IMG/VR virus record: IMGVR_UViG_3300025319_000005
Span: 124,001 to 188,000 of that record
Direction: 5' to 3' (one strand)
DNA: 64,000 nt
The position numbers were made by a program, and so were the translations under genes. The notes below the pieces were generated by a model, which worked only from the letters and a program-made list of their open reading frames with translations, made no database searches and was not told the DNA's origin. The stretch's first letter is position 1; each line of letters opens with the position of its first letter. This document shows positions 2,831-58,432 of this stretch, piece by piece.

Positions 2831-3076
2831 ATGAAAAGATTTACGGAAAGTGAATTAAAAAAGTATCTACAATCACAAGTGGAAAAAATAGTTATTTCAG
2901 AAGGTTTAATTAAAAAACAGAAAAGTAATCCGGTTCCGGAATTTGAAAGCTCTAAGAAAGAAACTGTATCAGAATCAGATAATATTCAAATTGAGGATGT
3001 AAAATTACTGGCTGAAGAGATAAAACGTATGAAAGAGCTTATTGATTTTAGAAATCCTTTACTAAAAAAAGAATAA
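2831..3076 (+). CDS. small putative late/virion-associated protein
   Basis: TATTTA at 2801-2806; leader ending VISE. Confidence 0.6.
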   Translation: MKRFTESELKKYLQSQVEKIVISEGLIKKQKSNPVPEFESSKKETVSESDNIQIEDVKLLAEEIKRMKELIDFRNPLLKKE

Positions 3077-3114
3077 TAACAACTTCGATAACAATTGCAG
3101 TTATCCAACGAGTT

Positions 3115-3147
3115 TAAAAAACCTTCAATTTTATTGGAGGTTTTTTG
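3115..3147 (+). terminator. intrinsic terminator
   Basis: AAAAACCTTCAA-loop-TTGGAGGTTTTT followed by a T run. Confidence 0.7.
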
Positions 3148-3192
3148 TTTTTATCAATTTATTCCTTTTTATTTGCATTAAATTATTAAACC

Positions 3193-3780
3193 ATGGAAGA
3201 TTCAGAATTTTTTTTAAAAATAGATGCTATGTTAAGTAAAACATTAAAAAACCAAACACTCAAAGAGATGCAAGATGAATTAATAGTTGAAATTACTAAA
3301 AATAAAGAAAACCATAAAGAAAATTTTAATCCTGCATTAGTTTTTAAAAAAATTGGACAAAATATATTTCGAAAATTTCTTGAAACAGAGAGAGGGTATA
3401 CATTACTTTATGATTGTGAAGACAACACTTTTGACCAAACATATATAAAAAATGGGAAAATAGAAGTATTTGAATTAAAAACAGATTACACCCATATGAT
3501 AAATGATGATAATACTGGAGAAATAGCAGATACAAAAAACATAGTAATCGAATTTAAATCCATTGATAAAATGGCTAAATTTTTTGTTACATACTTTCCT
3601 CAAATAAATGAGTTATGGTTAATTAGAACAGAAAAATTAAAGAAGCTTATTGAAGAAGAGAAATATAATTTTCAAACAATAAAAACAGGTGACAATATAA
3701 CTTATTTAACAAATAGAATAGAAATTAAATCAGAATTCAGCATAACAAATGTTTGCAAAGAAGAAATTGTAGTAGTGTAA
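3193..3780 (+). CDS. PD-(D/E)xK nuclease-like protein
   Basis: FD...EVFELKTD and NIVIE pattern; stop overlaps the methyltransferase start (TAATG). Confidence 0.45.
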   Translation: MEDSEFFLKIDAMLSKTLKNQTLKEMQDELIVEITKNKENHKENFNPALVFKKIGQNIFRKFLETERGYTLLYDCEDNTFDQTYIKNGKIEVFELKTDYTHMINDDNTGEIADTKNIVIEFKSIDKMAKFFVTYFPQINELWLIRTEKLKKLIEEEKYNFQTIKTGDNITYLTNRIEIKSEFSITNVCKEEIVVV

Positions 3781-4403: not shown

Positions 4404-4405
4404 CT

Positions 4406-4630
4406 TTGGGACATTACATTGATAATTATTTAAAAGCACTTCCGCCTTTTTTAAAACAAAATCAAAACGATGAAAATGTTCTAACAAGGATTGTTATTGT
4501 TGAAAAATATAATATAAATCCTTGGATTTGCTCAGGCAATTTAATAGAAGATTTAAAAAAAGACATGGATTATTTTCGTGCTAAAATGTTTAACTGTGTT
4601 GGAATTCCCTCAAAATACTTCGAAATATAA
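4406..4630 (+). CDS. small protein with RIVIVEKY tag and portal-like C-terminal segment
   Basis: TTG start; DMDYFRAKMFNCVGIPSKYF resembles the T4-type portal DxxYFxxKLxxxLxIP segment. Confidence 0.5.
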   Translation: MGHYIDNYLKALPPFLKQNQNDENVLTRIVIVEKYNINPWICSGNLIEDLKKDMDYFRAKMFNCVGIPSKYFEI

Positions 4631-4659
4631 TATTTTTTTAGATTATTTAATGATAAATC

Positions 4660-5298
4660 ATGTATTTATCTGAATCATATAAAAATCGTCTTAAATTGCT
4701 ATCTGGAGTTATTCTTGAAGATGGTTCTGATGCTGTGAAGCACACTCCTGGTCTTGACGAATTCTTAGAAAAAGTAGTCGAAAGATATAAAATTGACAAC
4801 ACATTTGTTGATATAATAAAACAATTTATTTTAAATTCTGATTGTAAAAAAATTTCAATTGAAAATCTTAAAATGGGTGATGCTGTTGCTATGTCTGATA
4901 GATTAATATTAAGTCCAAATGTTTTCAGAAATCATTTAGGTAGATTTTTATTCATATTATTTCATGAAACAGCTCATCAATATCAATTTAAAAAATATGG
5001 TGAGGATAAAATGCTTTCACTTTATACCGGCGACATTTCAATAAAAGAAGCTGCAGAACTTATGAAAAAAATAGAAGTTATCGCTGATGACTTTGCTGCA
5101 AGAAAAATTAGAGAATTAATTAAATTAAAATTTTTACATCCAAAGCATAGTGAATTCAAAGGATTTTACAAGGATGTTCCTATTGAAAAACTTTCACAAA
5201 CCATTATTCAAATAAAGGATATGTTAAAAAAACTAAACATAACCGAACCATCCAAAATTAGTGAAGTATTTTATAATTGGGTAAAGGCCGACTTATAA
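4660..5298 (+). CDS. HExxH metallopeptidase-like protein with shared N-terminal leader
   Basis: LFHETAHQYQ; leader MYLSESYKNRLKLLSGVILE; TATTTA at 4644-4649. Confidence 0.65.
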   Translation: MYLSESYKNRLKLLSGVILEDGSDAVKHTPGLDEFLEKVVERYKIDNTFVDIIKQFILNSDCKKISIENLKMGDAVAMSDRLILSPNVFRNHLGRFLFILFHETAHQYQFKKYGEDKMLSLYTGDISIKEAAELMKKIEVIADDFAARKIRELIKLKFLHPKHSEFKGFYKDVPIEKLSQTIIQIKDMLKKLNITEPSKISEVFYNWVKADL

Positions 5299-5338
5299 CT
5301 CTAATTATAACTTTTTTCAAGATATTTAATGATAAGTT

Positions 5339-7198
5339 ATGAACTTATCAGAATCGTACAAAAATCGCCTTAAATTATTGTCAGGAATTATTTCTGAGAA
5401 TGTTTCTAATATCCAAGAATTAGATATTGAAGACGTATCTATTCCGGCAAGCTACATAAAAGATTCCTTAAATCCACAAATATGGGATGGTGATAAGTTA
5501 AAACCAGAAATAAGAGAACATTTACTAAATATAGTTAATGGATACAAAAAGCATCTTGAATTAAAAATAGAACCTAAAGATGTTAAATTTTTGGGAAGTA
5601 TGGCTAATTTCAACTGGACAGATGCAAGTGATATTGATGTCCATTTATTTTATGACATAAAAAACATCTCTGATAATACAGAACTTACTAAGCAATTACT
5701 TGAAAGTAAAGGTAAAGATTGGAAAGATAATCACGATATAAAAATAAAAGGTTTCAATGTTGAATTATATGCTCAGGATATTAATGACCAATATCACTCT
5801 GGTGGTGTTTATGATTTACTTAATAACGACTGGATTAGTAAGCCAAAAAAAGAAGATGTTAAAGTTGACAAAGAATTAATAAAAAGAAAATCTTCTTCCA
5901 TTGCTACAAGAATAGAACATGTTGAAAAATTGTCTGATAATAATCCAGATAAAGTTTATAAAGAAGCAAAAAAATTAAAAGATAAAATCAAAAAAATGAG
6001 ACAAGCTGGTTTAGATAAAACTGGTGAATTTTCTGCTGAGAATTTAGTTTTTAAATACTTAAGAAACAATGGTTATCTTGATAGGTTAGGAAAAGTTATC
6101 TCAAAATCTTTTGATAAAAATCTATCACTGGATGAAACTAACATTACTGAAGCTAACCACGATATTGATCCAAGACATTTAAGGAAAGTTATTTTTAAAA
6201 GCAAACGCAGGCCAGAAATGATTATTGTCGTTAGTAAGACTTTAGATGGTAGAATTGTTGACATAGAAAATAAATTCAATATAAATTTCCCATTTAAAGT
6301 AGGACAGATTCTAAATAGAAACCATGAAACATGGGCTTGTAATAATCATTATTTTGTAAATGACAAAGATACTTGTCCGGAAGAAAAAGTATTTGGTATT
6401 AGAAAAAGTGATATTCCTCAAGGACATGAATTAAGAATGATGTTTCCGGGTAAATTTAAAAACGAATCAAAAATGGAATTAAATGAAGAAACCAATAAAC
6501 TTTCCTCGAAAGAATCACTTGAAATAAAAAGGGTAGCTAAAAAAGGAAATTTAAATATTGGAAGATATGATATCAACGAGCTTATTATGGGATTTCAAAT
6601 TGAAAAAGAACATGGTACAGTTAATCCAATAACAAATGTTACTAATGATGATGAAGTGAAAACCTTAAAAATTGCTTTAGCTCATCTTAATGAGGTACCG
6701 GACTATTATACAAAACTTAAAAAGTATGTAGAAAATGGGATTTCAGAATCAAAAAAAGTAAAAAAAAAATTAATGAATGAATCAACAGATTTTGAAGAAA
6801 AACAAAAGCATAAATTAATTATAAAAAAATCCGTTGACAATCTTGACGAAAACAAAATTAATCTTATTAAAAAGTTTATAATTTTTTGTTGTAAAGAATT
6901 AAAGATAGATAGTTCGTGCACTGTATTTTTAACAGGAAAAAGGGGTGGTCCAATTACTACTACTGCAAGTTATAATCCAGAAAATGACCATATTTGGATT
7001 TATACAAAAAACAGGAATATGCTGGCAGATCCAATGAGATCGATGGCGCACGAAATAAGACATTTTAAACAAAAATTAGATGGTGTTTTAACTGAAAAGT
7101 CAGGTGAGGATGGAAGCATTCATGAGAATGAAGCAAATTCTTTTAGTGGATGTATGATTAGAAAGTTTGGTAAAAACAATAGAGAAATTTATCAATAA
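5339..7198 (+). CDS. multi-module protein: leader + Pol-beta-type nucleotidyltransferase + unknown module + DUF5661-like + HExxH peptidase
   Basis: GSMANFNW..SDIDVH; MGFQIEKEH..IALAHLNEVPDYY; MAHEIRH; modules separated by LDE/ITE/LNE/ISE/MNE. Confidence 0.7.
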   Translation: MNLSESYKNRLKLLSGIISENVSNIQELDIEDVSIPASYIKDSLNPQIWDGDKLKPEIREHLLNIVNGYKKHLELKIEPKDVKFLGSMANFNWTDASDIDVHLFYDIKNISDNTELTKQLLESKGKDWKDNHDIKIKGFNVELYAQDINDQYHSGGVYDLLNNDWISKPKKEDVKVDKELIKRKSSSIATRIEHVEKLSDNNPDKVYKEAKKLKDKIKKMRQAGLDKTGEFSAENLVFKYLRNNGYLDRLGKVISKSFDKNLSLDETNITEANHDIDPRHLRKVIFKSKRRPEMIIVVSKTLDGRIVDIENKFNINFPFKVGQILNRNHETWACNNHYFVNDKDTCPEEKVFGIRKSDIPQGHELRMMFPGKFKNESKMELNEETNKLSSKESLEIKRVAKKGNLNIGRYDINELIMGFQIEKEHGTVNPITNVTNDDEVKTLKIALAHLNEVPDYYTKLKKYVENGISESKKVKKKLMNESTDFEEKQKHKLIIKKSVDNLDENKINLIKKFIIFCCKELKIDSSCTVFLTGKRGGPITTTASYNPENDHIWIYTKNRNMLADPMRSMAHEIRHFKQKLDGVLTEKSGEDGSIHENEANSFSGCMIRKFGKNNREIYQ

Positions 7199-8222: not shown

Positions 8223-9314
8223 TTAATCCTCCAATTTTGACTCCGGTTCTTCTGAATTTCTTTTTTCAATTGCATTTTTAATAGCTTCTATTTGTTTTTT
8301 ACCTAATTCTTCTGGATGGTGACAGATATCTATGCATAAATTTGATAAATCTGTATAATCCAATTGTGCAATGTAATTAATAAATGGCGCAAGGTCATGA
8401 CTTGTAACATCTGCAGTACTTAATAAAGCTCTCCATAATGTAGGTCCAAAAAAGTAATGCCACTGTTCGTGAGAATATTTATCAGCTTCAGCATAAACAT
8501 ATTCTAATTCATATGGAGGTAATTGAGGGATTCCAATTGAAGCAAGGTAATCAACTACTCCTTTTGAAAGTTCGTGAATTAACACTGGAAAATTCATTGC
8601 AGATGCTTTTATGTCCTTTTTTTCAATATCAACTTTATTATGACCCTGAACAACAGGACGACCACCCATCTGCATTGCATCAGCCTGAATCATTTGCCAG
8701 TTCCAATAATTTACAAGTGCAGACAATCTGTTGTATTTTCCTAAAAGCTCCGGATTTATATCATTTAATTTATCAGCAGCAATATAATAAGCTGATGTCC
8801 ATTGATGAATTGCGGCACCATGTACAATAGAATTAAGAATTCTTCTTTTTTCTATTTCAACTTTTAATTCTTCCTTTCTTTCATCACTAATCATTTCTTC
8901 TTCAACGTCACTATCATCAAAATCACCGTCTCCGGCTTCTTCATCTGAATTTTCTAAAAATGCTCTTAAATTAATTGTCTCAGGAACATTATACATTTCC
9001 CGAACAAGGTCTATTGCAATTTCCGTCAATTCTTCTCTGTGAGGAGCTTCAAGTTGTAATAATTCTTGCATTAACATCATTGCATGCATTGGACTTTGTC
9101 CTTCAGCACGTTCAATATATATGCGAGTGCAACGATTAAATTCATCCGCTCCAAGAAATGCCGGATTATAAGAAAAAAATCTATTCTCATTAAATGGAAA
9201 AGTTTTTTCATCAATCATTCTAACTATTCTTGGATTTGGCATATAATTTCCATTTTCCAAATATTCAGCAAACATTAATGTTGCATCTTGTTCTATTTTT
9301 TGTATTTCTGGCAT
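8223..9314 (-). CDS. conserved hypothetical protein
   Basis: 363 aa; KRRILNSIVHGAA, FPVLIHELSKG, FFGPTLW motifs. Confidence 0.65.
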   Translation of the reverse strand: MPEIQKIEQDATLMFAEYLENGNYMPNPRIVRMIDEKTFPFNENRFFSYNPAFLGADEFNRCTRIYIERAEGQSPMHAMMLMQELLQLEAPHREELTEIAIDLVREMYNVPETINLRAFLENSDEEAGDGDFDDSDVEEEMISDERKEELKVEIEKRRILNSIVHGAAIHQWTSAYYIAADKLNDINPELLGKYNRLSALVNYWNWQMIQADAMQMGGRPVVQGHNKVDIEKKDIKASAMNFPVLIHELSKGVVDYLASIGIPQLPPYELEYVYAEADKYSHEQWHYFFGPTLWRALLSTADVTSHDLAPFINYIAQLDYTDLSNLCIDICHHPEELGKKQIEAIKNAIEKRNSEEPESKLED

Positions 9315-10353: not shown

Positions 10354-12561
10354 TCAAAAATCAACAACATTATTATTGTCATTATGTGCAATATTTTGTA
10401 ATTCCTGAACGTTGAAATTAAAATCCAACATTTCGTTTTCTATATGTTTTGCTTGTTGAATTGTTTCTGGCAATTTCAAATCATAACAATTATTATATTC
10501 TTTTATTTCAAAGAATTTTTTAATAAAATCTTTTACTGAGTTAATTATTGTTTCGGTAGCTTTAGCATTATGTTTAGCTTTTAACTGATTAAAAGTATAT
10601 ATTGTTTTTTTTGAACCATCAGAATCAATATTCGAATATTGTATATTTATACTAAGAGTAGCTCTATCCATAGTTTCTAAATCTTCAACAGAATATATTA
10701 CAAAACTTCCTTTTGCAACATTTGCACAATAAGTTTTAACACAATGACTCATTACTGATGATTCTTCATAAAATTTTTCCGGAGTATCAATTAAATTAAA
10801 TTTGATATTATCAAAAATTCCTTCTGTATGTCTGAATTTATCTATGTGAATTTTTAAGTCTTCACTTAATTTTTTATCTGCAATCAACCTAAAAGAAAGA
10901 CTCAAAGAATTATGCATATCAACTAAAGCATCAAAAGTTTTTGATTTTAATATTTCAGTTAATTGAATCTCTACATTTATTAACATAAATATAGTGTCCA
11001 TATACAATTGAAGTATTTTTTCAAAATTAGCATCAGAGGTATGAAAGATTTTTAAAATATGGCAAAAATGTTTGTGGGTTATTTTAAAATGTCCTATTCT
11101 GTTAATGCTTTGATTATACATATTTTGCACACAAACAATAAAGTCGTAAGCATCTTTTATATTATTATTTAATATTATTTTGTCAACTGTTTCAATTTCG
11201 TCAAAAGCAGAATTGTTATGTAAGAATCCATAAAACACTTGAGCAACTTCATCAAAATTTCTTTCTAAAAATAAGTCTACATAAAATTTTCTAAATTGTA
11301 TATTTTTCAATCTCAATTTAATATCTTTATATATTGGAACCCTTGTGTCAACCTGTACTGTCGGATGAGTTGTTATTGAAAATAATAAATCTTTTTTTTG
11401 GGGATGAGCTTTTAATTTTCTCTTTCTTTTTTTCTCTTCTGTTTTTATGTATTTAATTATTTTTGTATGTTTCGAAAATTCAGAAGTTACTTTACTTTTA
11501 AACATAGTTTCCAAAATTGTTTTTGGATTGGTTGGATTTTTCTTTTTTAAGTTTGTCAAAGAACACACAAAAGAAGAATTTGTTAATAAATTAAGAAATT
11601 TATCCGGACCATAAGTAAGAATTAATGTCACGATGGGCTGATAAACTGAAAGTGACAACATTATACATAATCTTCTTTTTAAATATTGTATCCAAATATA
11701 TCTGCTTGTAGACATATTTCCATTATAGTTACTGAGCGATTCTGGCTTATAATGACAATTATTTAAAAAAGATTCTTCACCACAATTAGTTGGAGAGCTA
11801 CTTAAATTTCTAAATAAAGAATTCAAATACATTTCATCACGCTCTTTTTCTAATATTAAATTTATTCTATTAACATCCCTCTGGTCACATTTTGATTCTA
11901 CTAGTTCACAAAATTTTATTAAAGGTTTTATTACCTGTCTTTCAAAAAGTCCTTGCGAAATTACATTTTCATATAATGCATTTAATGTCATATTGTTAAC
12001 TATTGAAGAACAATGTTTAACAAGAAATCTAAACGGCACTGTAATTATTTTTTCCTTAATTTTTATCTTTATGGTATCGCTTTTTTTAGAAAGGTATAAT
12101 GAACGATTACTAATATTCCTAAAAATCAATTTTTTTGTTGTAACAGAGACAAACACTATAGTTGCAAAAGAATATAAAGCATAAAAATTTTCTTTTTCAA
12201 CTACACCAAATCTTTTTGATGTAACATTTCCTTCTATTTCTTTAGAGTAAATTAACTTTACACCGGAAAGGGATTTGTACTCTTTACTGCAACTATTGCA
12301 AATTGTTTTTTGACTTGAAATTATTTTACCGTATCCATTTCTACTTATTGCTTCAAAAGGAATTTCAGTCATTTGACCACAAGTACAATATAAAGCCCAT
12401 CTTTTATTGGAATAATTGTTTTGAAAATGGCTGAATTCTTTTTTTACATTTGTTTCTGGTGTGCTTTCCACGTCATCAAAAGACGGATTAGAAGAATCGT
12501 TATATTGTGGAGTCCTAACTAAATCAAATATAAGAGCAAGATATGGATTTTTTTCTTTCAA
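10354..12561 (-). CDS. PcfJ-like domain protein
   Basis: C-terminal EESSVMSHCVKTY..RATL..QLKAKHN; N-terminal Cys pairs. Confidence 0.65.
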   Translation of the reverse strand: MKEKNPYLALIFDLVRTPQYNDSSNPSFDDVESTPETNVKKEFSHFQNNYSNKRWALYCTCGQMTEIPFEAISRNGYGKIISSQKTICNSCSKEYKSLSGVKLIYSKEIEGNVTSKRFGVVEKENFYALYSFATIVFVSVTTKKLIFRNISNRSLYLSKKSDTIKIKIKEKIITVPFRFLVKHCSSIVNNMTLNALYENVISQGLFERQVIKPLIKFCELVESKCDQRDVNRINLILEKERDEMYLNSLFRNLSSSPTNCGEESFLNNCHYKPESLSNYNGNMSTSRYIWIQYLKRRLCIMLSLSVYQPIVTLILTYGPDKFLNLLTNSSFVCSLTNLKKKNPTNPKTILETMFKSKVTSEFSKHTKIIKYIKTEEKKRKRKLKAHPQKKDLLFSITTHPTVQVDTRVPIYKDIKLRLKNIQFRKFYVDLFLERNFDEVAQVFYGFLHNNSAFDEIETVDKIILNNNIKDAYDFIVCVQNMYNQSINRIGHFKITHKHFCHILKIFHTSDANFEKILQLYMDTIFMLINVEIQLTEILKSKTFDALVDMHNSLSLSFRLIADKKLSEDLKIHIDKFRHTEGIFDNIKFNLIDTPEKFYEESSVMSHCVKTYCANVAKGSFVIYSVEDLETMDRATLSINIQYSNIDSDGSKKTIYTFNQLKAKHNAKATETIINSVKDFIKKFFEIKEYNNCYDLKLPETIQQAKHIENEMLDFNFNVQELQNIAHNDNNNVVDF

Positions 12562-46769: not shown

Positions 46770-47017
46770 GATTTCATATTTTTAAACATTAAGCTTTCCA
46801 TTGAGACTTGAAATTCTGTTTCAAATACAGGACTAGCCACTAAATCATAAGAAAATAATGAAATATCTATTTCACTTGTATAAATTCCAGGACTTACAAA
46901 CATTTTAGGACTAGCCCACCAAATAGGAACGTTTCCATAACAATCAAATTTGGGAGTATAATAACGTCTACCAAAGTATTTTTCAATTATAACAAATCTT
47001 GTAAATATGTTTTCCAT
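46766..47017 (-). CDS. small protein with RFVIIEKY tag
   Basis: FSYDLVASP weakly resembles the gp21-type prohead protease D.V..PS segment. Confidence 0.45.
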   Translation of the reverse strand: MENIFTRFVIIEKYFGRRYYTPKFDCYGNVPIWWASPKMFVSPGIYTSEIDISLFSYDLVASPVFETEFQVSMESLMFKNMKS

Positions 47018-48394: not shown

Positions 48395-48850
48395 ATGAGA
48401 AACATCAGAAAAATGATAAGGAAAATCTTAATAGAGGAATCAAAACCCACGGTTGTTTATTCTGCTGTTGTTATTGAGAAACTTGAAGGTATTGGGAAGT
48501 TGGATTTGATTTTTAGTAAGTACATCGAAAACGGTTGGCAAAAACCGGTTCATTATCATATGACAATCGGACCGGGAAAATTTCCTGAGAGCTTGTATTT
48601 AAAAGGAGATTTAGATAAAGAAGTAACATTAGAAATAACGTCTGTAGGAATTTCAGAAAATGCTATAGCATTGGGAGTTTCAGGATATTATTCAAGAAAT
48701 GACAATCCACACATTACTATTGCTTTCAATAAAGAAAACGGAGGAAATCCGGAAGATAGCAAAGTGATTGAAAATTGGGGACATATTGATAATTTTTATG
48801 TGACTGGAATAATAAGAGAAGTTGGCGAAAATAATTTAGTTATTAAATAA
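48395..48850 (+). CDS. 2H phosphoesterase (cyclic phosphodiesterase-like) with shared leader
   Basis: two HxT motifs (YHMTI, PHITI); MRNIRKMIRKILIE. Confidence 0.75.
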   Translation: MRNIRKMIRKILIEESKPTVVYSAVVIEKLEGIGKLDLIFSKYIENGWQKPVHYHMTIGPGKFPESLYLKGDLDKEVTLEITSVGISENAIALGVSGYYSRNDNPHITIAFNKENGGNPEDSKVIENWGHIDNFYVTGIIREVGENNLVIK

Positions 48851-48934: not shown

Positions 48935-49621
48935 TTATATTAATTCATATCGTTTTGCCCACTTTCTCACCGCAACATCACTAACTCCAAATTTTCTACC
49001 AAGTGCACAATATGAATTATTTTCTATCATTTCTTTTAATTCTTCTTTAGAGGGTCTGTTTTTTACTTTTCTAAAATTTAATCTAGGTACATATTTTCTC
49101 GTTGTTTTTTTATTTGTTTTATTTTTTTTTGCATTTTTTCTGTCTACGCCAATTTTACCACGGCAATGAGTTTCTAATGTGAAATTGCAGTTTGGACATA
49201 AAAATCTTAAGTTTTCTAATCTATTATCATTATTTATTCCGTTTTCGTGGTCAATAATTAAACTAATTTTTTTACCTCTCCATATTTCTCCTTGTCCACA
49301 TTCTTTACATTCATATTCTATCATGTTATTATCTCGTATTCTTTTTTTTAAACAAGCCCTTGCAACAGAACTGTTTTCACAAAAAATTTCTTCATCACTT
49401 TTCCTTAATAATCTGTCTTCATTAAACATTTTTTTAGCAAAATCACTACGGTTTAAAAAATGAGAAGTATCTATTGACCATTTATTTAAATTTGTTTTAA
49501 GTATTTTATAAGATGAAGAAGAATCGCTTCTTCCAGATTTTACTATAACATCTCTAAATGTGATGCTTTCAGATACTAATTTTTGTAATTCTTCTTTTGT
49601 ATATTCTTTATGTTCTTTCAT
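48935..49621 (-). CDS. HNH homing endonuclease
   Basis: CKECG..IIDHENGINNDNRLENLRFLCPNC; C-terminal HTH. Confidence 0.9.
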   Translation of the reverse strand: MKEHKEYTKEELQKLVSESITFRDVIVKSGRSDSSSSYKILKTNLNKWSIDTSHFLNRSDFAKKMFNEDRLLRKSDEEIFCENSSVARACLKKRIRDNNMIEYECKECGQGEIWRGKKISLIIDHENGINNDNRLENLRFLCPNCNFTLETHCRGKIGVDRKNAKKNKTNKKTTRKYVPRLNFRKVKNRPSKEELKEMIENNSYCALGRKFGVSDVAVRKWAKRYELI

Positions 49622-49678
49622 AATTCTAACTTATTTTAATGTAAATAGGTTAGAATTTTTTAATAAAGTAAATAGTTG

Positions 49679-49754
49679 AGGATAAGAAGAGAATTAAACT
49701 CCTGTTAAATATGTTTTGCAGACATATCCCGATTTCAACATTGGGTACTTATCC
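49679..49754 (-). tRNA. tRNA-Cys(GCA)
   Basis: GGATAAG/CTTATCC, CT-GCA-AA, U73, T loop TTTAATT. Confidence 0.8.
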
Positions 49755-49768
49755 TTGTAAAAATTAAA

Positions 49769-50038
49769 AAAGTAAAATCCTAAGTATAGCCGCGATTTTG
49801 TTCTATCTCATCATTTATCTGAAGGTATTGCTACCAACTGGAGACTTTAAACGTCTACCACGCACCTACCCGACTATCAACAACGTAAAGGTTCCCCGTC
49901 TACAGTCTGTTTGGCTTGCATCCTATGTTGCGGAAGTACATACGCTATTTGTTATAGCTTCTTCCTCCTTTTAAAAGATGTCGCGAACTTCCTCTCGATT
50001 TTAAGAATCGAGCGATGAGTCCTTCAGGATTTTACTTT
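49769..50038 (-). ncRNA. rnpB: RNase P RNA, compact A-type-like with reduced specificity domain
   Basis: P1 AAAGTAAAATCCT/AGGATTTTACTTT; CR-I GAGGAAGTTCGCGAC; GCAAGCCAAA; GGGTAGGTGC; AGATAAATGAT; CR-V ACAAAATCGCGGCTATA; P4 with bulged U. Confidence 0.88.
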
Positions 50039-50043
50039 TCTTG

Positions 50044-50115
50044 AGGCTCCACTGACAATCGATGTCAGGACTCAAATTTACAAGATTCGTGTTTTGCCAC
50101 TTAAACTACGGAGCC
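50044..50115 (-). tRNA. tRNA-Thr(TGT)
   Basis: 72-nt cloverleaf, CT-TGT-AA, T loop ATCGATT. Confidence 0.85.
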
Positions 50116-50131
50116 ATTATTTGTTCTTATG

Positions 50132-50205
50132 TGGAATCTACCGGCATTGAACCGGTCTCTCAGGCGTGCAAGGCAAGTGTTCTAAGCCAAATGAACTAAG
50201 ACCCC
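50132..50205 (-). tRNA. tRNA-Ala(TGC)
   Basis: G3:U70, CT-TGC-AC; anticodon stem has two mismatches. Confidence 0.85.
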
Positions 50206-50243
50206 AATTTAATTTGTTCAAAGTACAAATTATTAAAAACTTT

Positions 50244-50319
50244 TGGCGAGTATGACCGGTCCTGACCCGGCGACCTCCTCATAGACAGTGAGGCATTCTT
50301 CCAACTGAACTACACACTC
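50244..50319 (-). tRNA. tRNA-Asp(GTC)
   Basis: cloverleaf, CT-GTC-TA, G73, encoded CCA, T loop GTCAGGA. Confidence 0.9.
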
Positions 50320-50332
50320 ATTATTTTTTAAA

Positions 50333-50639
50333 AAAGTAAGACGCCATTTCGCTGATAGCGTTTTTTGTGTTCTGTTTAATGCGCCAAAGAACATCTGATT
50401 ATGTTCAGCATTTAGCGTTCATGCTTGGTTATTATAACATACTAACATTCCTAATATTGTCTGATTACCTATTTTGAGTTTGCATAGTAGGTTGATTTTT
50501 ATTTCCAGGGTAAAAATCAACAAACAAACCTAACGTCTGATAAACTTTATTTTTCATCCGGTAAACGTTTTGTACATTGTTTAGTTCATTAGGCTAAAAC
50601 AACACGTCTTTTTCACGGACAACATTAGTAACTTACTTT
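50333..50639 (-). ncRNA. unidentified ~307-nt structured RNA
   Basis: closing stem AAAGTAAG/CTTACTTT, perfect 11-bp hairpin GTTGATTTTTA/TAAAAATCAAC and further hairpins; no long ORF; lies between tRNAs; strand inferred from the operon. Confidence 0.65.
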
Positions 50640-50644
50640 TCTTG

Positions 50645-50718
50645 TAGTGCATCTGAGAATTGAACTCAGTACTTCCACGTTATCGGCGTGGCACTCTGGA
50701 CCGATGAGTTAATGCACT
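50645..50718 (-). tRNA. tRNA-Ile(GAT)
   Basis: cloverleaf, CC-GAT-AA (C33). Confidence 0.88.
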
Positions 50719-50732
50719 GTTTTTATTTAAAG

Positions 50733-50805
50733 TCTAGGTGGCCTGCTCCGACCAGGCGGTCTCCAGTTCCCAAAACTGGCGGATTTCCAACTTTCCCACA
50801 CCTAG
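50733..50805 (-). tRNA. tRNA-Pro(TGG)
   Basis: C1:G72, TT-TGG-GA, T loop GTCGGAG. Confidence 0.87.
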
Positions 50806-50842
50806 AAATTTTGTTTATCTTTCCAAACTGTCTTTTAATAAG

Positions 50843-50906
50843 AGTTCAAGCTCGGTTATCCACCGATTCGAAGGACTGCATTAGCCTTCTCTGCAGACAC
50901 TTGAAC
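50843..50906 (-). ncRNA. 64-nt tRNA-sized element lacking D and anticodon arms
   Basis: acceptor-like GTTCAAG/CTTGAAC, T-like hairpin TCGG-TGGATAA-CCGA, alternative central stems. Confidence 0.5.
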
Positions 50907-50908
50907 AT

Positions 50909-50984
50909 TGGAGCGAAAAACCAGGTTCAAACTGGCGACCCCCAGAGTGGAAATCTGGCGCTCTATCAACTGAGCTATTTTCGC
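50909..50984 (-). tRNA. tRNA-Gly(TCC)
   Basis: cloverleaf, TT-TCC-AC, U73, CCA. Confidence 0.9.
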
Positions 50985-51073
50985 TTATGTATATAATTCT
51001 CTCAGACCATATTACCAAGATTTACTTTGGACTCACCGTATTTTAAAAGTGAGCAGAATTGTATTTAATTAAA

Positions 51074-52021
51074 TTATTCTAATAATAATTCATCAATTGT
51101 TAAAATTGAATTTAAATTATCTATTGTTTTTTTAAATATCATTTTAACATTAATGTTGTTTTGTTCTAATACTAAACTCATTTTTGTTTTATCTATTATT
51201 GAATAATATCCTTTAGTTTCTATGTATAAGTTAAAATTTGGCAAATAAAAATCTGGCACATACGTTTTTTCAACACCTTCTTTAATATATTGAATATATA
51301 TTTTTCTAATCCACAATATTTTATTGTCATTTAACCATTGCGACATTTTTAATTCATATTTTCCTCTTAAAGAATATTCTTCACCAATAATATTTTTTTG
51401 TTTATAAAATTTCACATGTTTAAAATTGTTACTTATTTCATTTTCTTCTAACATCTTGGAGTGAGATTTGCTAATTTTCGATTTTTGTTCAGAAGAAAGT
51501 GGCTTTCCTAATTGGTGATGTATTCTCTTACCAGTAGCATACATTTCTTTTTGTTGCTCAGATGCTTTATTTACCCTATTATCAGTTTCCTTTGTAAGTC
51601 CTCTTGACCATCCCATTTTTGATTTAGTCTCTGCATTACTGTATTTTTTATTTTTATATTCAACTCCATCCGGTGTATGCATTTGAAATATATGACCACA
51701 TATACCAAGTTTGTGAAATATTAATTCGCAATGAGGACATTTATATTTATCTACATCAACTTTCCAAGATTCATCTACTGTTATTTGTTTTTTATTAACT
51801 GTATTACATTTATTATAATGCCTTTCAAAATTAGAAACAGAAATATTTTTATTACATTTATCACAACATTTTGTGTTTTTAGGTTTTCCAAGTAAAGAAA
51901 TACTTAAATTTTTTAATCTTTCTTTTAACTTTGGATTAGATTCACAATTTACTATATGAGCACCAAATTGTTGTGGGATCTCAAACTCAAAAGACTCTTT
52001 GCAATGCGGACAAGTTTTCAT
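51074..52021 (-). CDS. homing endonuclease-like protein (Zn fingers + PD-(D/E)xK)
   Basis: CPHC and CDKC fingers; YVPDFYLP..LYIETKGY. Confidence 0.8.
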   Translation of the reverse strand: MKTCPHCKESFEFEIPQQFGAHIVNCESNPKLKERLKNLSISLLGKPKNTKCCDKCNKNISVSNFERHYNKCNTVNKKQITVDESWKVDVDKYKCPHCELIFHKLGICGHIFQMHTPDGVEYKNKKYSNAETKSKMGWSRGLTKETDNRVNKASEQQKEMYATGKRIHHQLGKPLSSEQKSKISKSHSKMLEENEISNNFKHVKFYKQKNIIGEEYSLRGKYELKMSQWLNDNKILWIRKIYIQYIKEGVEKTYVPDFYLPNFNLYIETKGYYSIIDKTKMSLVLEQNNINVKMIFKKTIDNLNSILTIDELLLE

Positions 52022-52090
52022 ACTTTTTTATTATAAATAGTATAAAAAATTGCAGGTTAGAAAATTGTTAGCACGTTATTGTTTTTTGAG

Positions 52091-52173
52091 TGGGAGTTGA
52101 TGGAGACGAGCCACCCGAGTTTTAAAACAACCGATTTACAGTCGGTCCCGCTACCCCTACGGAATAAACTCCC
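52091..52173 (-). tRNA. tRNA-Tyr(GTA)
   Basis: CT-GTA-AA, long variable arm, T loop CTCGTCT. Confidence 0.87.
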
Positions 52174-52185
52174 ATTTTAATGTTG

Positions 52186-52257
52186 CACAGACGGTTATAA
52201 TCGAAATAACTACGTGTAGTTTTTGGAGAACTCACCGACACCAAGCCTGTCGTCTGT
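52186..52257 (-). tRNA. tRNA-Trp(CCA)
   Basis: CT-CCA-AA, G73, canonical T arm; weak D arm. Confidence 0.75.
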
Positions 52258-52296
52258 ATTTTATCTATTTTTTAAGCTGTAAGATAATTAGCTAAG

Positions 52297-52368
52297 TAGC
52301 GAAAACTGGAATCGAACCAATGTAGACACAGCTTATGAGACTGGTGGGAAACCAACATCCTTTTCGCA
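52297..52368 (-). tRNA. tRNA-Met(CAT), initiator-like
   Basis: 1:72 mismatch, CT-CAT-AA; weak D arm. Confidence 0.75.
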
Positions 52369-52381
52369 ATATATTTTTTTG

Positions 52382-52454
52382 TAGCCCCTGCCGGTCCTGA
52401 CCCGACGACTTCATTCATGTAAAAAATGCACTCTACCAACTGAGTTAAGGGGCT
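52382..52454 (-). tRNA. tRNA-Val(TAC)
   Basis: cloverleaf, TT-TAC-AT, T loop GTCAGGA. Confidence 0.88.
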
Positions 52455-52459
52455 ATTAG

Positions 52460-52533
52460 TAGCATATATCAGAATCAAACTGATGACCTTCCTCATATGA
52501 AAAGGACGCTCTAATCAACTGAGCTAATATGCT
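52460..52533 (-). tRNA. tRNA(CAT): elongator Met or Ile2
   Basis: cloverleaf, TT-CAT-AT; identity not resolvable from sequence. Confidence 0.85.
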
Positions 52534-52543
52534 ATTTAAAAAG

Positions 52544-52615
52544 AGCGGGTGATGAGGATTAAACTCACGGCCTCATCCTTGGCAAGGATGCGCTCTATCG
52601 CTGAGCTACACCCGC
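52544..52615 (-). tRNA. tRNA-Gly(GCC)
   Basis: cloverleaf, TT-GCC-AA, U73. Confidence 0.92.
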
Positions 52616-53509: not shown

Positions 53510-53680
53510 ATGAAAAATTTAAAAAAAATAATAGAAGAAACAGTAAGTAAAGTTCTGGGTGAAGGCGATTTTTTAACACATCAAATAAAAAATTCAATAA
53601 GCGTGTTAAATAATGTTTTCAAAGACAACTTAGTTGCAAAGATAAACGAAACAAATGATAAAGATAAACGAAACAAATGA
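53510..53680 (+). pseudogene. 5' part (leader) of the ART-like gene, detached by a 22-nt duplication
   Basis: MKNLKKIIEETVSKVLGE..; removing one repeat copy fuses it in frame to 53655-54263. Confidence 0.7.
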
Positions 53681-53681
53681 T
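53638..53681. repeat. 22-nt perfect tandem duplication
   Basis: AAAGATAAACGAAACAAATGAT x2. Confidence 0.95.
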
Positions 53682-54263
53682 AGTGTTATTGATGTTTATA
53701 TTAAGAAATACAATATAAATGCATTAACAAAAATAGATAAAACGATAGAAAATTTAGGATATTTTATTTCTATTTTTAGTATAAATGGATTTCAAAAGAA
53801 ATTTAACAAAGATTCATTTTTTAAAAAAATAAAAGACTTAAAAGAATTAACTCCAATATACCTAAAGCTGGAGAAAAAAATGGACTCAAATGAAGATATA
53901 GATACAATTATCCCATCTATGTTATATCACATTACACATGAAAGACATCTCGCAAAAATCAAGAAAATAGGTTTAGTTCCAAAATCTAAATCTAAAAAAT
54001 CAGCTCATCCTGAAAGAATATATTTAGCGTGGAATGAAGAATCTGCTATAAAATTAGTAAAAGAATTTTCAGATTTAGAATACGAATTTGAACATAATTA
54101 TGTTTTATTAAAAATTGACACAAGTAAAATTTCTGAGTTTAGACGTGATAAAAATTTCAAATTACATAATGACCCAAACTTTACAGATGGTTATTTTACA
54201 TATGATAATATACCTCCTGCTGCAATAAATTTTGAAAATATGAAATTAATAAACCTTGAATAA
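53655..54263 (+). CDS. Tpt1/KptA-like ADP-ribosyltransferase-fold protein
   Basis: LYHITH....IKKIGLVP, IYLA, LLKID, NIPPAAI. Confidence 0.6.
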   Translation: MIKINETNDSVIDVYIKKYNINALTKIDKTIENLGYFISIFSINGFQKKFNKDSFFKKIKDLKELTPIYLKLEKKMDSNEDIDTIIPSMLYHITHERHLAKIKKIGLVPKSKSKKSAHPERIYLAWNEESAIKLVKEFSDLEYEFEHNYVLLKIDTSKISEFRRDKNFKLHNDPNFTDGYFTYDNIPPAAINFENMKLINLE

Positions 54264-55386: not shown

Positions 55387-55955
55387 TGATAAAACCCTTT
55401 TCTTTTTATATAATTAGCAACTTGCGGTGCTAAAAAATCTTTCACATCTCTATTTTCCTTTATCTCGTTTCGGATAAATGTGGAAGACATTTCAATTAAA
55501 TTAACATCAAACATTTTTACTTTTGGATGTAAAATTAGATTACCGCCATCGCTGGAGCTACGTGAATATACATAAATTTGATATTCTTCAAGTATTTTTT
55601 GATAATCTTTCCACTTGTGTAAGTTTTCTAAATTATCAGTTCCCATTATTATAACAAATTCATTTTCTTTAAATGTTTCTTTTAATAAATTGAGCGTATC
55701 TATAGTATACGAAGGTTTTGATAAATTAAATTCAATATCACTGGCTCTCATATGTTCATTATCAATTAATGCCATATTAACCATTTTTAACCTTTCTTTT
55801 TCTGATAGTAGAGAATTTTTATCCTTGAGAGGATTGTGAGGAGATATTATAAACCACACACATTCCAATTCGGTATGTTCAAGCATGTAAGACGCCAATA
55901 TTGTGTGACCGTTGTGGATTGGATTAAAACTACCGAAGAATAAACCTATTTTCAT
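55383..55955 (-). CDS. nadD: nicotinate-nucleotide adenylyltransferase
   Basis: FFGSFNPIHNGH, SYTIDTL, IMGTDN, WKDY, MSSTFIR; start reassigned to 55955. Confidence 0.93.
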   Translation of the reverse strand: MKIGLFFGSFNPIHNGHTILASYMLEHTELECVWFIISPHNPLKDKNSLLSEKERLKMVNMALIDNEHMRASDIEFNLSKPSYTIDTLNLLKETFKENEFVIIMGTDNLENLHKWKDYQKILEEYQIYVYSRSSSDGGNLILHPKVKMFDVNLIEMSSTFIRNEIKENRDVKDFLAPQVANYIKRKGFYQ

Positions 55956-56037
55956 ATGTGATATTATTAAACGAAGATAATCATTATAATGTTGCAACTA
56001 ACTTTTTTAAACTATTTATTGAAAAAAGAAATATAAA

Positions 56038-57411
56038 ATGAATAATAAAGAACTAAGAAAATCGATAAGAAGGATTTTAAAGGAAAATCTTGAAAATTCT
56101 GATTGGGTGAATGCCAGTGATGCTCAAAAAGCTGCAATGCAAGATATAGACTCAGAAGATGAATTTGAACACTTAGGAACTAATAGGTTTGAAAAAGATT
56201 TTGATGTTGAAGATTTTCTATATGATTTAGAAGCTCAAAAAAATATGTCTGAGCCATCTGTAAAAAGATTAGAAAAACAAATTGGGCAATTAAAAAGATT
56301 TGGAAAGGGTTCTTTGAATGAATTATCGCCAGAAATAAGACAATCCGCACTTAAAAAAGCTGTTGATTATATTGAACAACCTGGAGATACCTATCATAAA
56401 GACCCGCTCCAATATATTAAGAAAAAAAACCAAGCAAATTCATTTATTTCTCATGTTAATCCTGAGTTAAAAAAAGAAGCTATGGAAATAGCAAAAATGA
56501 TAGATGTAAATTGTGAAAGTCGTATAGAAAAAGAAGCGGTAGGAAGTACACTTGAACCAAATGTTGTATTATATTTTGGTCAAAACATTGCAGATTTAAG
56601 TAATCAAATACTTAAAATTGCCATTAAAAAAGATAATCATACATGGGAAACCAAAAAATTTATTCCTGAAAATATTCAAAGAAGATTGGCTAATTTTATA
56701 AAAAAGATTCAAACAAAAGAAATATCTAGTCCAGTTAAACAATTGAATGAGAGATTTCTTGGTGGATGGCATTATTTCGCAACTCCAGAAGGTAAAGAAG
56801 AATATATTAAAGACCTCGAGTCTAAAAAGATTAATGCAAAAGGAGAAGAATTAGAGCAAATTGAAAAAGAACTTAAAAAGTTAAAATCAATAAAACCAAA
56901 ATCCTTAAAAGAAGAAACATCAAAACTTGACAAGCCAAAAGATTCTGCAGGAAATTCAATATCATCCGGAGTGAGAGTTGAAGATTTAGAGTCGGGTAGT
57001 GCTGGACGAGTTGAGAGATTTGGTATTGACGACAAAGGACAATTAACAGTTCATGTTGCTTGGATAACAAAATATGGACAGATAGCTCCAAAGTCCATTG
57101 TTTATCCCAAAAATATAATTGTTAAAGATTCTGCAAAAAAGATAACAGACGAAGGAATTAAAGATACTTTAAAAAATATTTATAAAGAATTGAATCCTAT
57201 TGAAAAATGGAAACAAATGAAAGAAAATCGTAAAAAGCTCGAAAAAGAAGTTAGTGATTTACGAAGAGAAGTTTCTGAAAAGGAAAAAGAATTAGAAAAA
57301 ATAGTGAATAGTAATCATATTAAAGCTGATGTAAGTAATGATGTTGACGAAGGAATTGGAGCTGGATTATCACTTCCAATAAAAAAAGGAGCCGGAAGCA
57401 GATTTAAATAA
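56038..57411 (+). CDS. multi-module protein with shared leader
   Basis: MNNKELRKSIRRILKE; LNE/LNE/LKEE/VDE junctions; TATTTA at 56013-56018. Confidence 0.6.
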   Translation: MNNKELRKSIRRILKENLENSDWVNASDAQKAAMQDIDSEDEFEHLGTNRFEKDFDVEDFLYDLEAQKNMSEPSVKRLEKQIGQLKRFGKGSLNELSPEIRQSALKKAVDYIEQPGDTYHKDPLQYIKKKNQANSFISHVNPELKKEAMEIAKMIDVNCESRIEKEAVGSTLEPNVVLYFGQNIADLSNQILKIAIKKDNHTWETKKFIPENIQRRLANFIKKIQTKEISSPVKQLNERFLGGWHYFATPEGKEEYIKDLESKKINAKGEELEQIEKELKKLKSIKPKSLKEETSKLDKPKDSAGNSISSGVRVEDLESGSAGRVERFGIDDKGQLTVHVAWITKYGQIAPKSIVYPKNIIVKDSAKKITDEGIKDTLKNIYKELNPIEKWKQMKENRKKLEKEVSDLRREVSEKEKELEKIVNSNHIKADVSNDVDEGIGAGLSLPIKKGAGSRFK

Positions 57412-57418
57412 AACTATT

Positions 57419-58432
57419 TTGGAAAATAAGTTAAGAAAATATATTCAAAAAATCCTTCAAGAATCTTTAAATACAGAAGACATTCCTGAAGACATCCCCA
57501 TTAAAAAAGATTTAAAATTCACTGAGACCTCAAGAGGTTCGCATCATGGCCAGCAGGATTTAACAGCTTATGCCACAATAGAGGGAATAGTAGTTGGCTA
57601 TGTTGAATATTCTATATTTCAGAACGAAATCCACATAGAAATGATTGAAGTTGTTGAAGAACAAAAAAGACAAGGAATAGCAACAAAATTATTTCATTTT
57701 ATAAGACTTAAAAATTCTGGTATGAAAATTATTCCAGGATATTCAACCGAAGAAGGAAGTAAATTTTATAATGCTTATAAAAGCAAAAAACTAAAAGAAG
57801 ATATAAATGTTCCTATAAATGTTGGAGATACCGTTCTTGGTGGCCGTTTTAAAAATAAAAAAATTATTATTAAAGATATAGGAAAGTCAGATAAGGGCGA
57901 CATTACAATTAATGACAAGCCTCTTTTAAAAGTTAGGATTCCAAAGAAAATAAATGAAGAAAAATTGACATGTTTATATATTCATGGTTTAGGAGCTGAA
58001 ATATCTGATGATATTAAAAATTCTCTTTCCAAATACAATCTCATATATCCCAAAATAAACTACGACAAAACAACAAAACCATATTATCAATGTTTAGAAA
58101 TATTAAATAAAGATAAGGTGGATTTTATAATAGGTCATTCTATAGGTGGAGTTATGGGTTATTATTTAGCTAAAGAAACAAATATTCCAGCTTTATTATT
58201 ATGTCCGGCATTTGGAGATGAATATAAAGTTCTCACAAGTAAGTTAGTTAAAGATAATAACCCAAAAATAGTTGTTATCATAGGAAAAAAAGATGATGAA
58301 GTTGATAATAAAAAAGTTAAATCCACTTTAGAAAATCAACCCAATTGTGTTATTAAAGAATTAAATATCGGACATGATATTACAGAAAAAAATCTGATTT
58401 TATTTGCTGATGGTTTTGTTGAAAATTTATAA
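57419..58432 (+). CDS. leader + GNAT + small beta module + alpha/beta hydrolase
   Basis: TTG start; KLRKYIQKILQE; KRQGIATKL; LKE and INEE junctions; GHSIGG nucleophile elbow, terminal GHD. Confidence 0.7.
   Translation: MENKLRKYIQKILQESLNTEDIPEDIPIKKDLKFTETSRGSHHGQQDLTAYATIEGIVVGYVEYSIFQNEIHIEMIEVVEEQKRQGIATKLFHFIRLKNSGMKIIPGYSTEEGSKFYNAYKSKKLKEDINVPINVGDTVLGGRFKNKKIIIKDIGKSDKGDITINDKPLLKVRIPKKINEEKLTCLYIHGLGAEISDDIKNSLSKYNLIYPKINYDKTTKPYYQCLEILNKDKVDFIIGHSIGGVMGYYLAKETNIPALLLCPAFGDEYKVLTSKLVKDNNPKIVVIIGKKDDEVDNKKVKSTLENQPNCVIKELNIGHDITEKNLILFADGFVENL

Follow-up and report, generated by a model that had tools for sequence, protein, structure and literature searches.

Short N-terminal leaders on unrelated proteins of a huge phage match T4-type scaffold tails and may target proteins to the prohead

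The window analysed here is a 64-kb stretch covering positions 124,001-188,000 of the 212,632-bp IMG/VR contig IMGVR_UViG_3300025319_000005 (29% G+C), and it contains a set of genes whose products begin with a short, basic and amphipathic leader peptide that ends in a hydrophobic residue, any residue and Glu. Proteins identical to those of the contig are encoded on a 503,412-bp NCBI record (GCA_902731165.1, CACVIJ010000001.1), so the contig represents less than half of a huge phage genome of about 503 kb. In total, 254 kb of sequence were examined, namely the contig and 42 kb past its end, the latter added through exact-protein look-ups. All of the 16 leaders that an initial annotation of the window had listed were found at the starts it gave, with N-termini reading as it had described them, and the predicted cut falls after residue 14-24 in each. 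They are sorted here into three classes (h, hydrophobic; x, any residue): type A is (R/K)(L/M)xxL(A/S)G(I/L/V) with [IL]xE a few residues behind it and has the core R-M-x-E-L-A-G-I-x-E; type B is h-(R/Q)-(K/R)-x-L-x-E; and type C, a third class drawn from what had been called looser forms, is K-h-(T/S)-x-x-(E/Q)-h-x-x-h-h-x-(x)-E. The type A leaders start at window positions 4660, 5339, 17811, 18310, 24871 and 34619 and reach their [IL]xE end at residue 18-21, while the type B leaders start at 16470, 48357, 48395, 56038 and 57419 with L-x-E at residue 14-18; every type A and type B leader in the window thus terminates in [IL]xE. The five looser leaders end in hxE at residue 18-24. They are all present, and those at 41476 and 42738 are placed in type C, which the one at 2831 fits less clearly; for 2831, 35599 and 53510 the membership is uncertain.

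The first type A gene (4660-5298, plus strand) encodes a 212-residue protein with the leader ...RLKLLSGVILE (nt 4660-4719, aa 1-20) and has TATTTA 16 nt upstream. The alignments with its structural neighbours in an Atlas search begin only at residue 18-25; zincin peptidases make up the weaker of these leads, and with its HETAH motif the protein looks like a metallopeptidase. The next gene (5339-7198, plus strand; leader ...RLKLLSGIISE, nt 5339-5398) encodes a 619-residue protein with a nucleotidyltransferase-like domain (PHROG 36119) at aa 40-264 and DUF5661 at aa 397-462, and its matches of the Pol-beta or poly(A)-polymerase type are weak. The leaders of these two neighbours differ by 8 synonymous codon changes in 24 codons, which agrees with the earlier statement that the peptide was kept despite synonymous changes in the DNA. 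The third gene (17825-18310, minus strand) encodes a 161-residue GNAT-like protein with the leader ...KRMRELAGINE (nt 18251-18310), and the gene directly downstream of it, probably in the same operon, encodes an 89-residue low-complexity protein (17542-17811, minus strand; leader ...KRMRELAGIINE, nt 17749-17811). In the orthologues of the 161-residue protein RMxxLAG[IL]..E is kept, even across a five-residue insertion (LAGIKLHLSE), while its distant homologues have an unrelated domain of about 100 residues in the place of the leader. In the AlphaFold2 model of this protein (pLDDT 85) the leader is a detached, low-confidence helix (aa 3-15), followed by a flexible segment that holds the I-N-E site (pLDDT below 50 at aa 17-19), and the fold starts at about residue 26. 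Nearly all Foldseek matches of the model are GNATs, none of them significant (E > 0.1), and the GNAT leads are weak. A 504-residue type A protein (23357-24871, minus strand; leader ...KRLQELAGILSE, nt 24818-24871; CCTATTTA 13 nt upstream) had no relatives in IMG/VR; within the phage its body is paralogous to that of a 521-residue type A protein, whose C-terminal part is encoded at 2-778 (plus strand) and whose leader MSIISESYKNKLMRLAGVNLKTLTE (contig position 123213) is encoded shortly before the window begins. The longest type A protein has 836 residues (32109-34619, minus strand; leader ...KLMSLAGLLNE, nt 34560-34619) and holds an internal type B copy, IRKILFE (aa 678-684, nt 32568-32588), before its C-terminal domain. 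The sole relative found for it is a weak match of residues 701-812 to the N-terminal part of a 'coil containing protein' of Vibrio phage 1.122.A, the gene for which lies between those for head morphogenesis and the major capsid protein.

Among the type B genes, 16470-17009 (plus strand) encodes a 179-residue protein with the leader ...LRIAIRKSLME (nt 16470-16523) and has CCTATTTAT upstream. Two others are divergently transcribed, each with its own TCTATTTATC motif on its strand: 47890-48357 (minus strand; 155 residues; leader MEQIRKIIRKCLFE, nt 48316-48357) and 48395-48850 (plus strand; 151 residues; leader MRNIRKMIRKILIE, nt 48395-48436). The 151-residue protein is 2H phosphoesterase-like, the LigT_PEase match (E = 9e-4) being below the curated cut-off, and over residues 21-128 it is similar to a P-loop fusion protein of the T4-like phage G001, in the C-terminal half of the latter. 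The remaining two are in tandem, with only 8 nt between the stop of 56038-57411 (plus strand; 457 residues; leader ...LRKSIRRILKE, nt 56038-56085; ACTATTTAT upstream) and the TTG start of 57419-58432 (plus strand; 337 residues; leader ...LRKYIQKILQE, nt 57419-57463). The 337-residue protein contains a GNAT domain (Acetyltransf_1, E = 4e-5, above the cut-off) and has a weak match to the hydrolase-like UPF0227 family; the Atlas structural search gave no usable match for the 457-residue protein, nor for a 592-residue one.

The two type C genes are 40679-41476 (minus strand; about 265 residues; leader MANIKKITAEDFKKMVLAE, nt 41420-41476), the ATG of which is internal to a longer open reading frame (ORF) starting with TTG, and 42738-43259 (plus strand; 173 residues; leader ...KISAKQLQTIISE, nt 42738-42794), to which a gene at contig position 94319, with a leader of the same class, is weakly paralogous. 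A further type C-like leader, absent from the initial annotation, precedes a 228-residue protein (48935-49621, minus strand; ...YTKEELQKLVSE, nt 49568-49621; CCTATTTAC 27 nt upstream). The less certain members are the type C-like leader of an 81-residue protein (2831-3076, plus strand; ...FTESELKKYLQSQVEKIVISE, nt 2831-2902; CATATTTAG upstream), that of a 162-residue protein (35111-35599, minus strand; ...SWLSNIILE, nt 35540-35599; GACTATTTAAT upstream) and that of a split gene (53510-54263, plus strand; MKNLKKIIEETVSKVLGE, nt 53510-53563). In the latter a perfect 22-bp tandem duplication (AAAGATAAACGAAACAAATGAT twice, nt 53640-53683, plus strand) divides the gene into the ORFs 53510-53680 and 53655-54263, and it is a genuine mutation that inactivates the gene or else a variant within the population or of the assembly. 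Taken over the window, the diversity of cargo claimed earlier holds for metallopeptidase-, nucleotidyltransferase-, GNAT-, 2H- and hydrolase-like proteins, several of them by weak matches, while an ART-fold was not confirmed anywhere in the window. Two GNAT-like proteins are encoded in the window, one of them above the Pfam cut-off, and a third just past the window end.

The leaders are not a by-product of composition. In 463 ORFs of the 254 kb, compared with 200 within-protein shuffles, type A was observed at N-termini 9 times against 0.03 expected, type B (as a loose 7-mer) 15 times against 1.3, and type C 4 times against 0.01; a composition artefact is thereby ruled out for the three types. 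The motif [IL]xE has a background of 0.016 per residue, yet it lies within 9 residues after the core in all nine type A leaders. Moreover, BLASTP similarity between most leader proteins ends at about residue 24 (as it does within the 4660/5339 pair and with the leader encoded at contig position 101621), and some of the cargo has leaderless paralogues, as in the pairing of a 546-residue protein (contig position 205545) with the 363-residue protein at window positions 8223-9314. The leader is thus a short N-terminal sequence and putative propeptide common to otherwise unrelated proteins, which rules out a single paralogous family for types A, B and C, and the variation of synonymous codons likewise rules out an element acting at the level of DNA or RNA; the motif is real, enriched at N-termini and selected as a peptide. 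At least 25 leader genes are present in this half of the genome. The only two further type A matches in the 254 kb lie outside N-termini, both at extreme C-termini (...GERMRRLAGL-stop and ...RLRMRKLSGILKE-stop). With these copies and the internal type B copy in the 836-residue protein, the tag is not confined to N-termini but is found at C-termini and at domain junctions within proteins as well, a caveat to the N-terminal picture drawn before. The two C-terminal bearers (contig positions 193689-194273 and 196982-197395, both minus strand) are encoded past the window end in a late-promoter cluster together with a peptidoglycan amidase, the third leader-bearing GNAT and a 250-residue protein with a weak match to the scaffold family, and this cluster may be one of head-internal proteins.

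The leader genes are also linked by their upstream sequences. For 13 of the 16 listed genes a TATTTA is present in the 60 nt upstream, in line with the claim that most have it shortly upstream; of the other three, two begin 8-14 nt past the stop codon of a preceding leader gene and one has CATTTA. When leader genes are defined by regular expression, TATTTA is upstream of 16 of 25, against 63 of 438 other genes (Fisher p = 7e-8). The motif (C/T)TATTTA is 9.7-fold enriched upstream of genes and is found before most leader genes as well as before the amidase gene and the large tail and baseplate-cluster genes, a pattern which suggests that leader genes are co-expressed with virion genes. A second upstream motif, GTATAGTACA (long form about TTCGTATAGTACATTATA), stands before 54 small genes with 15-19-fold enrichment, only at contig positions 5-94 kb, and probably represents an early promoter class.

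The identity of the type A motif became apparent in the head modules of other phages. Six C-terminal bearers are acidic coiled-coil proteins of 315-403 residues that start with ...LKEAIADAK... and are encoded directly upstream of a Gp23 gene (PF07068, E = 1e-68 to 1e-74); at one of the loci (L164) the gene is also directly downstream of Peptidase_S77 (hereafter S77). Judged by gene order, these coiled-coil proteins occupy the position of the T4 scaffolding core protein gp22. As a guard against circularity, 16 records were picked solely for an N-terminal cargo copy of the motif. Gp23 is encoded by 6 of 6 such records of at least 100 kb and by 3 of 3 that are at least 90% complete, and in each of the six the protein encoded in the gp22 position has a type A motif as its C-terminal end (...RWQILAGIKKI, ...ARMKKLANIK, ...RRMRMLAGIVKPINE, ...LRMQKLAGII, ...IRMKRMAGIDTKS and ...ARWQKLAGINK). 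The same tail is found in the cultured Flavobacterium phage vB_FspM_immuto (scaffold end ...RWQKLAGIIK) and in the 484-kb uncultured phage LR756508.1; two reading frames of immuto, starting at 111675 and 25061 of its record NC_055915.1, moreover open with a type A leader. Altogether, 14 of 14 T4-like head modules examined have the type A core as the C-terminal end of their scaffold, which is encoded between the S77 protease and Gp23, and a hidden Markov model (HMM) built from the nine leaders of this phage alone finds its best match in the last 15 or so residues of all 14 scaffolds. In these tails R-[MW]-x-x-L-A-[GN]-I stands at the extreme terminus with a protease-type site on the body side, and many are preceded by [ILV]xE (PIVE/SNEAFLRMQKLAGII, PILE/VN..., KLFE/SE...), which mirrors the N-terminal layout, so that the protease-type site always lies between docking motif and body, whichever end carries the tag. 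The motif co-occurs with Gp23 and also with S77, which was present in 5 of 5 genomes tested (three cargo-selected records, immuto and LR756508.1) and in 4 of 5 large relatives encoding nucleotidyltransferase homologues, overall in 9 of 10 leader-bearing relatives. In addition, small proteins of the head modules carry leaders of their own: type A in two genes between protease and scaffold (G008), type C in three genes between portal and protease (G006), and type B-like in immuto (73 residues) and at locus L182 (166 residues). The gene of immuto at NC_055915.1 125626-126867 (L185 5431-6672) is labelled 'DNA polymerase phi-like protein' and lies between the prohead protease and major capsid genes; given this position, its scaffold-type N-terminus and its tail motif, it is almost certainly a mis-annotated gp22-type scaffolding protein.

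The leaders are portable among phages. Homologues of the nucleotidyltransferase-like domain of the 619-residue protein occur on 43 IMG/VR contigs, and depending on the phage this domain bears a type A leader, a type B leader (for example MNIFIKKLLREGL), a type C leader (MDIKKITEQEVNDLIQKE, to which the leader MANIKKITAEDFKKMVLAE at 41476 is closely similar) or none; in two long homologues an internal ...KKLLRES... copy stands exactly at the junction with the upstream module. A type A profile of 34 positions, searched against 1.84 billion cluster representatives (E <= 1e-3), gave 148 matches, all in unnamed metagenomic proteins. About 125 of them begin from residue 1 in proteins of 34-819 residues, and the remaining ones have two to five copies, at the starts of repeated modules or at the C-terminus. 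Four metagenomic proteins (P0135, P0138, P0139 and P0140) consist of two to four repeated modules, each with its own type A leader and in some cases still with an initial Met, and resemble fused cassettes. In IMG/VR, a scan with a degenerate DNA pattern for RM[RQK]ELAGI gave 80 loci in 63 distinct contexts, of which 27 are N-terminal, 19 extreme C-terminal and 17 internal; in 20 of the 27 N-terminal cases an [ILV]xE comes next, and its P3 residue is often the I of LAGI. The phage LR756508.1 encodes, just downstream of the capsid gene (L186 15268-17682), three paralogues with MRLKEILLE-type leaders. At seven IMG/VR loci from another group of phages (L099, L107, L111, L136, L151, L158 and L163) a Mu-type portal domain (PF06074) runs directly into ...NRMRELAGIVPLE..., behind which comes a 249-residue C-terminal domain, phrog_24776, so that portal, motif and domain are fused. 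No paper naming the motif was found within the searchable library.

On this basis we consider it likely that the leaders are capsid-targeting propeptides for a T4-type prohead, serving both targeting and cleavage, and with less confidence that the cargo is injected and has effector functions. The portable tag for capsid targeting and cleavage, as initially proposed, finds computational support in the identity with scaffold tails, the leaders within head modules, the co-occurrence with Gp23 and S77, the portability and the promoter-like motif; the binding partner, cleavage, packaging and injection are what we infer from these data. Late in infection, some 25 or more unrelated proteins would be made from TATTTA-type promoters alongside the virion proteins, and their amphipathic leaders of 14-24 residues would dock on the prohead core or the inner shell during assembly. 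Because type A copies the scaffold's own tail, it is proposed to dock by mimicking the C-terminal tail of the gp22-type scaffold (R-M-x-E-L-A-G-I-x-E), while types B and C would act like the N-termini of the small core proteins from head modules; as docking partner we would guess the inward-facing N-terminal region of the capsid protein. A prohead protease of the gp21/S77 type could then cut after the terminal [IL]-x-E and set the mature enzyme free inside the capsid. In this way the leader-bearing enzymes would probably enter the capsid, be trimmed there and exit together with the DNA to act early in the next cell.

Such a system would resemble that of the T4 internal proteins IPI, IPII and IPIII and of Alt in having a short N-terminal propeptide with an L/I-x-E end on unrelated proteins, in belonging to a lineage with a T4-type head (Gp23 and S77, as seen in the relatives) and in host-modifying or anti-defence enzymes as cargo. 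It would be unlike T4 in that the leaders have 14-24 residues and fall into at least three classes, type A is the scaffold tail itself, the tag also occurs at C-termini and internal junctions, and at least 25 genes in half a genome compare with only a handful in T4. The leader motifs (R-M-x-E-L-A-G-I-x-E and h-R-K-x-L-x-E) look unrelated to MKTYQEFIAE, which targets T4 proteins to the capsid, and the leaders are classed as a variant and not as homologues. In T4 the targeting sequence is a 10-residue N-terminal propeptide, gp21 cuts after L/I-X-E, Alt has propeptides at both ends, and the internal proteins are diverse anti-defence proteins with the targeting sequence as their sole common part (PMC9026906; PMC3012670). 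The inner-body and ejection proteins of phiKZ, 201phi2-1 and SPN3US have propeptides that are cut after Glu by a gp21-like protease (PMC9026906), and these are also large phages with many packaged proteins, as is predicted here; their genomes, however, are without the Gp23-type gene order, and for phiKZ-type sites S/A-x-E and no conserved targeting helix have been described, whereas here L or I stands at P3 and the helix is conserved. Polyvalent proteins and effectors fused to MuF or portal proteins have been predicted to be packaged and injected, among them GNAT, 2H, zincin peptidase and nucleotidyltransferase domains (Iyer, Burroughs, Anand, de Souza and Aravind 2017; PMC5512222). The cargo classes found here (GNAT, 2H, metallopeptidase-like and nucleotidyltransferase-like) match this repertoire, and some relatives fuse several leader-domain cassettes, or a portal-motif-domain unit, in one polypeptide; in the phage studied here, however, the cargo is not fused to an anchor in a single polypeptide but mostly encoded in separate genes with their own leaders, an internal junction copy being found only in the 836-residue protein. 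Docking inside the procapsid is known for the C-terminal helices of the P22 and phi29 scaffolds and for the HK97 protease tail, which can carry foreign cargo; in contrast to these, the tail motif described here belongs to a T4 gp22-type core protein and is reused at the N-termini of many separate genes.

Other explanations of the leaders have to be weighed. They might recruit accessories of prohead assembly or of the core (an auxiliary scaffold, size determination or maturation) that are then degraded or retained and form no injected arsenal. The motif is native to scaffolds and to small core-position proteins, some of its bearers are of low complexity (17542-17811) or without assigned function, and in T4 the core proteins gp67 and gp68 are cleaved and their fragments leave the head (PMC9026906). 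Nevertheless, many bearers are enzyme-like (the HExxH peptidase, the nucleotidyltransferase-like protein, three GNATs and the 2H protein) and of classes known from packaged effectors, and the T4 targeting sequence with its cleavage serves injected proteins such as IPI and Alt; we regard this explanation as unlikely. Somewhat less likely again is a generic docking helix or inter-domain linker that has nothing to do with capsids, the scaffolds being one use among many. The internal copies at domain junctions and in tandem module repeats, as well as the copy after a Mu-type portal domain, would suit a linker, and the complex prediction gave no verdict on a binding partner. Against it, the motif has a strong preference for the termini (residue 1-25 or the last 10-15 residues), with a protease-type [IL]xE consistently on its body-facing side; besides, the named bearers other than cargo are head proteins (scaffold, portal fusions, 'virion structural protein') and the genomes with the motif also encode Gp23.

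The leaders might instead be amphipathic helices that target membranes, as do those at the termini of MinD and FtsA, and bring the enzymes to the inner membrane; they are basic, amphipathic and found at either terminus, and T4 proheads do assemble on the membrane. Yet the invariant L-A-G core and the trailing acidic [IL]xE are not features of membrane helices, the motif is the same as the scaffold tail and copies exist at internal junctions, and this explanation is very improbable. Hardly any weight is left for an artefact of the K/E/I/L-rich composition at 29% G+C, of paralogy within a single family or of a nucleic-acid element at gene starts: although [IL]xE is common and some pairs are adjacent paralogues, the shuffles, the unrelated protein bodies, the varying synonymous codons and the presence of the motif in 148 distant protein clusters and about 80 viral contigs contradict it for types A, B and C. 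It is possible only for 2831, 35599 and 53510, which could be chance helices since [ILVM]xE is common in this K/E/I-rich proteome, and this uncertainty is one of several points that weigh against reading the leaders as capsid-targeting propeptides. Sub-threshold matches underlie several of the cargo assignments, and PHROGs and Pfam gave no match for most cargo proteins or for the scaffolds. No Peptidase_S77 was found in the 212-kb contig or in the gene lists of the 42-kb extension, and neither a gp22-type scaffold gene nor a complete Gp23 gene was found in the same 254 of about 503 kb. Furthermore, a complex prediction for a Gp23 capsid protein with a 45-residue scaffold tail came to no verdict and counts on neither side of the binding question. 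Finally, the motif also follows the Mu-type portal domain, in phages possibly without S77, so it may be a broader docking or linker element of the capsid interior that is not bound to S77.

The head lineage of the phage itself can be read in part from its own genes. An ORF in the window (47024-47842, minus strand) matches PF07068 positions 3-61 and aligns with the capsid protein of phage G001, solely over the N-terminal propeptide region of Gp23 (WKNSGFLDGL...LYENQAS) and the first conserved strand. This fragment is broken by insertions and flanked by two TRxVLxEK motifs; by its sequence it shows T4-type head ancestry, though it is not a complete capsid gene, and it may represent a pseudogene, a decoy or what is left of a duplicated gene. 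The 42 kb past the contig end contain replication genes, including a RecA-like gene, DNA polymerase A and DNA polymerase III, and also a 1,536-residue VanY-domain protein, large late proteins and two T4_baseplate (PF12322) genes; by these baseplate genes and the Gp23 fragment, the virion genes found in the phage are T4-like. When an alignment of capsid proteins was used for a profile search, matches came only from relatives of another phage, a megablast search of 5.7 kb of the window against cultured phages gave no match, and a sequence pattern taken from past the contig end had no match in IMG/VR.

If capsid targeting is accepted, a wider meaning may be considered. We put forward, tentatively and as something about which we are less than evenly convinced, that R-M-x-E-L-A-G-I-x-E together with the B and C helices forms a packaging code that is widespread among non-enterobacterial T4-like phages, huge ones included, and has so far gone undescribed. 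In that case any protein with a copy of the scaffold tail, whether N-terminal, C-terminal or between the modules of a polyprotein, would be loaded and then released by the head protease, the packaged and injected proteome of uncultured phages could be read from sequence, and the tag might serve to bring foreign proteins into capsids of this kind. Co-injected proteins decide the first minutes of infection, in the escape from restriction and other defences and in the takeover of the host, and the injected set of uncultured phages is otherwise almost unknowable. The number of leader genes suggests that a huge phage would spend a sizeable share of its coding capacity on pre-made enzymes, and scaffold-tail mimicry offers a mechanistic hypothesis for how T4-type proheads select their cargo, for which Flavobacterium phage immuto is the cultured test system pointed to.

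Several other features of the phage were observed. A second peptide motif, T/S-R-x-V/I-h-x-E-K (typically TRKVL[TIFV]EK[FYS]), which contains L-x-E, occurs 44 times and always in the sense frame of ORFs. In the window it is found in 4406-4630 (plus strand), 46524-46769 and 46766-47017 (both minus strand) and twice in the Gp23 fragment ORF, and most copies are at contig positions 2-45 kb. It lies near N-termini, at C-termini or internally, in at least five unrelated families of small proteins with GTATAGTACA upstream, and since its Arg and Leu codons vary it is conserved at the peptide level. Repeated genes for TRKVL-motif proteins of 144-200 residues are preceded by another motif, CGTTTAAAYAGTT, at positions 198920, 218084, 241797 and 245282 (extended coordinates of the contig), and a scan of IMG/VR for TRKVLxEKF gave only 17 loci, some of them in other low-G+C phage contigs. 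In addition, the window encodes a protein unusual for a phage (25330-26421, minus strand), which combines a phenylalanyl-tRNA synthetase alpha-type core (PF01409, E = 4e-59) with a ferredoxin-fold anticodon-binding domain (PF03147) in a single-chain layout that we take to resemble the monomeric mitochondrial enzyme. There are 16 tRNA genes in two minus-strand arrays (49678-52615 and 58459-61089), for Cys, Thr, Ala, Asp, Ile, Pro, Gly (two), Val, Met, Lys (three), His, Asn and Phe. Moreover, PcfJ-like domains (PF14284) are encoded at 10354-12561, 38462-40573 and 26452-27120, all on the minus strand, and two of these three proteins are longer than 700 residues.

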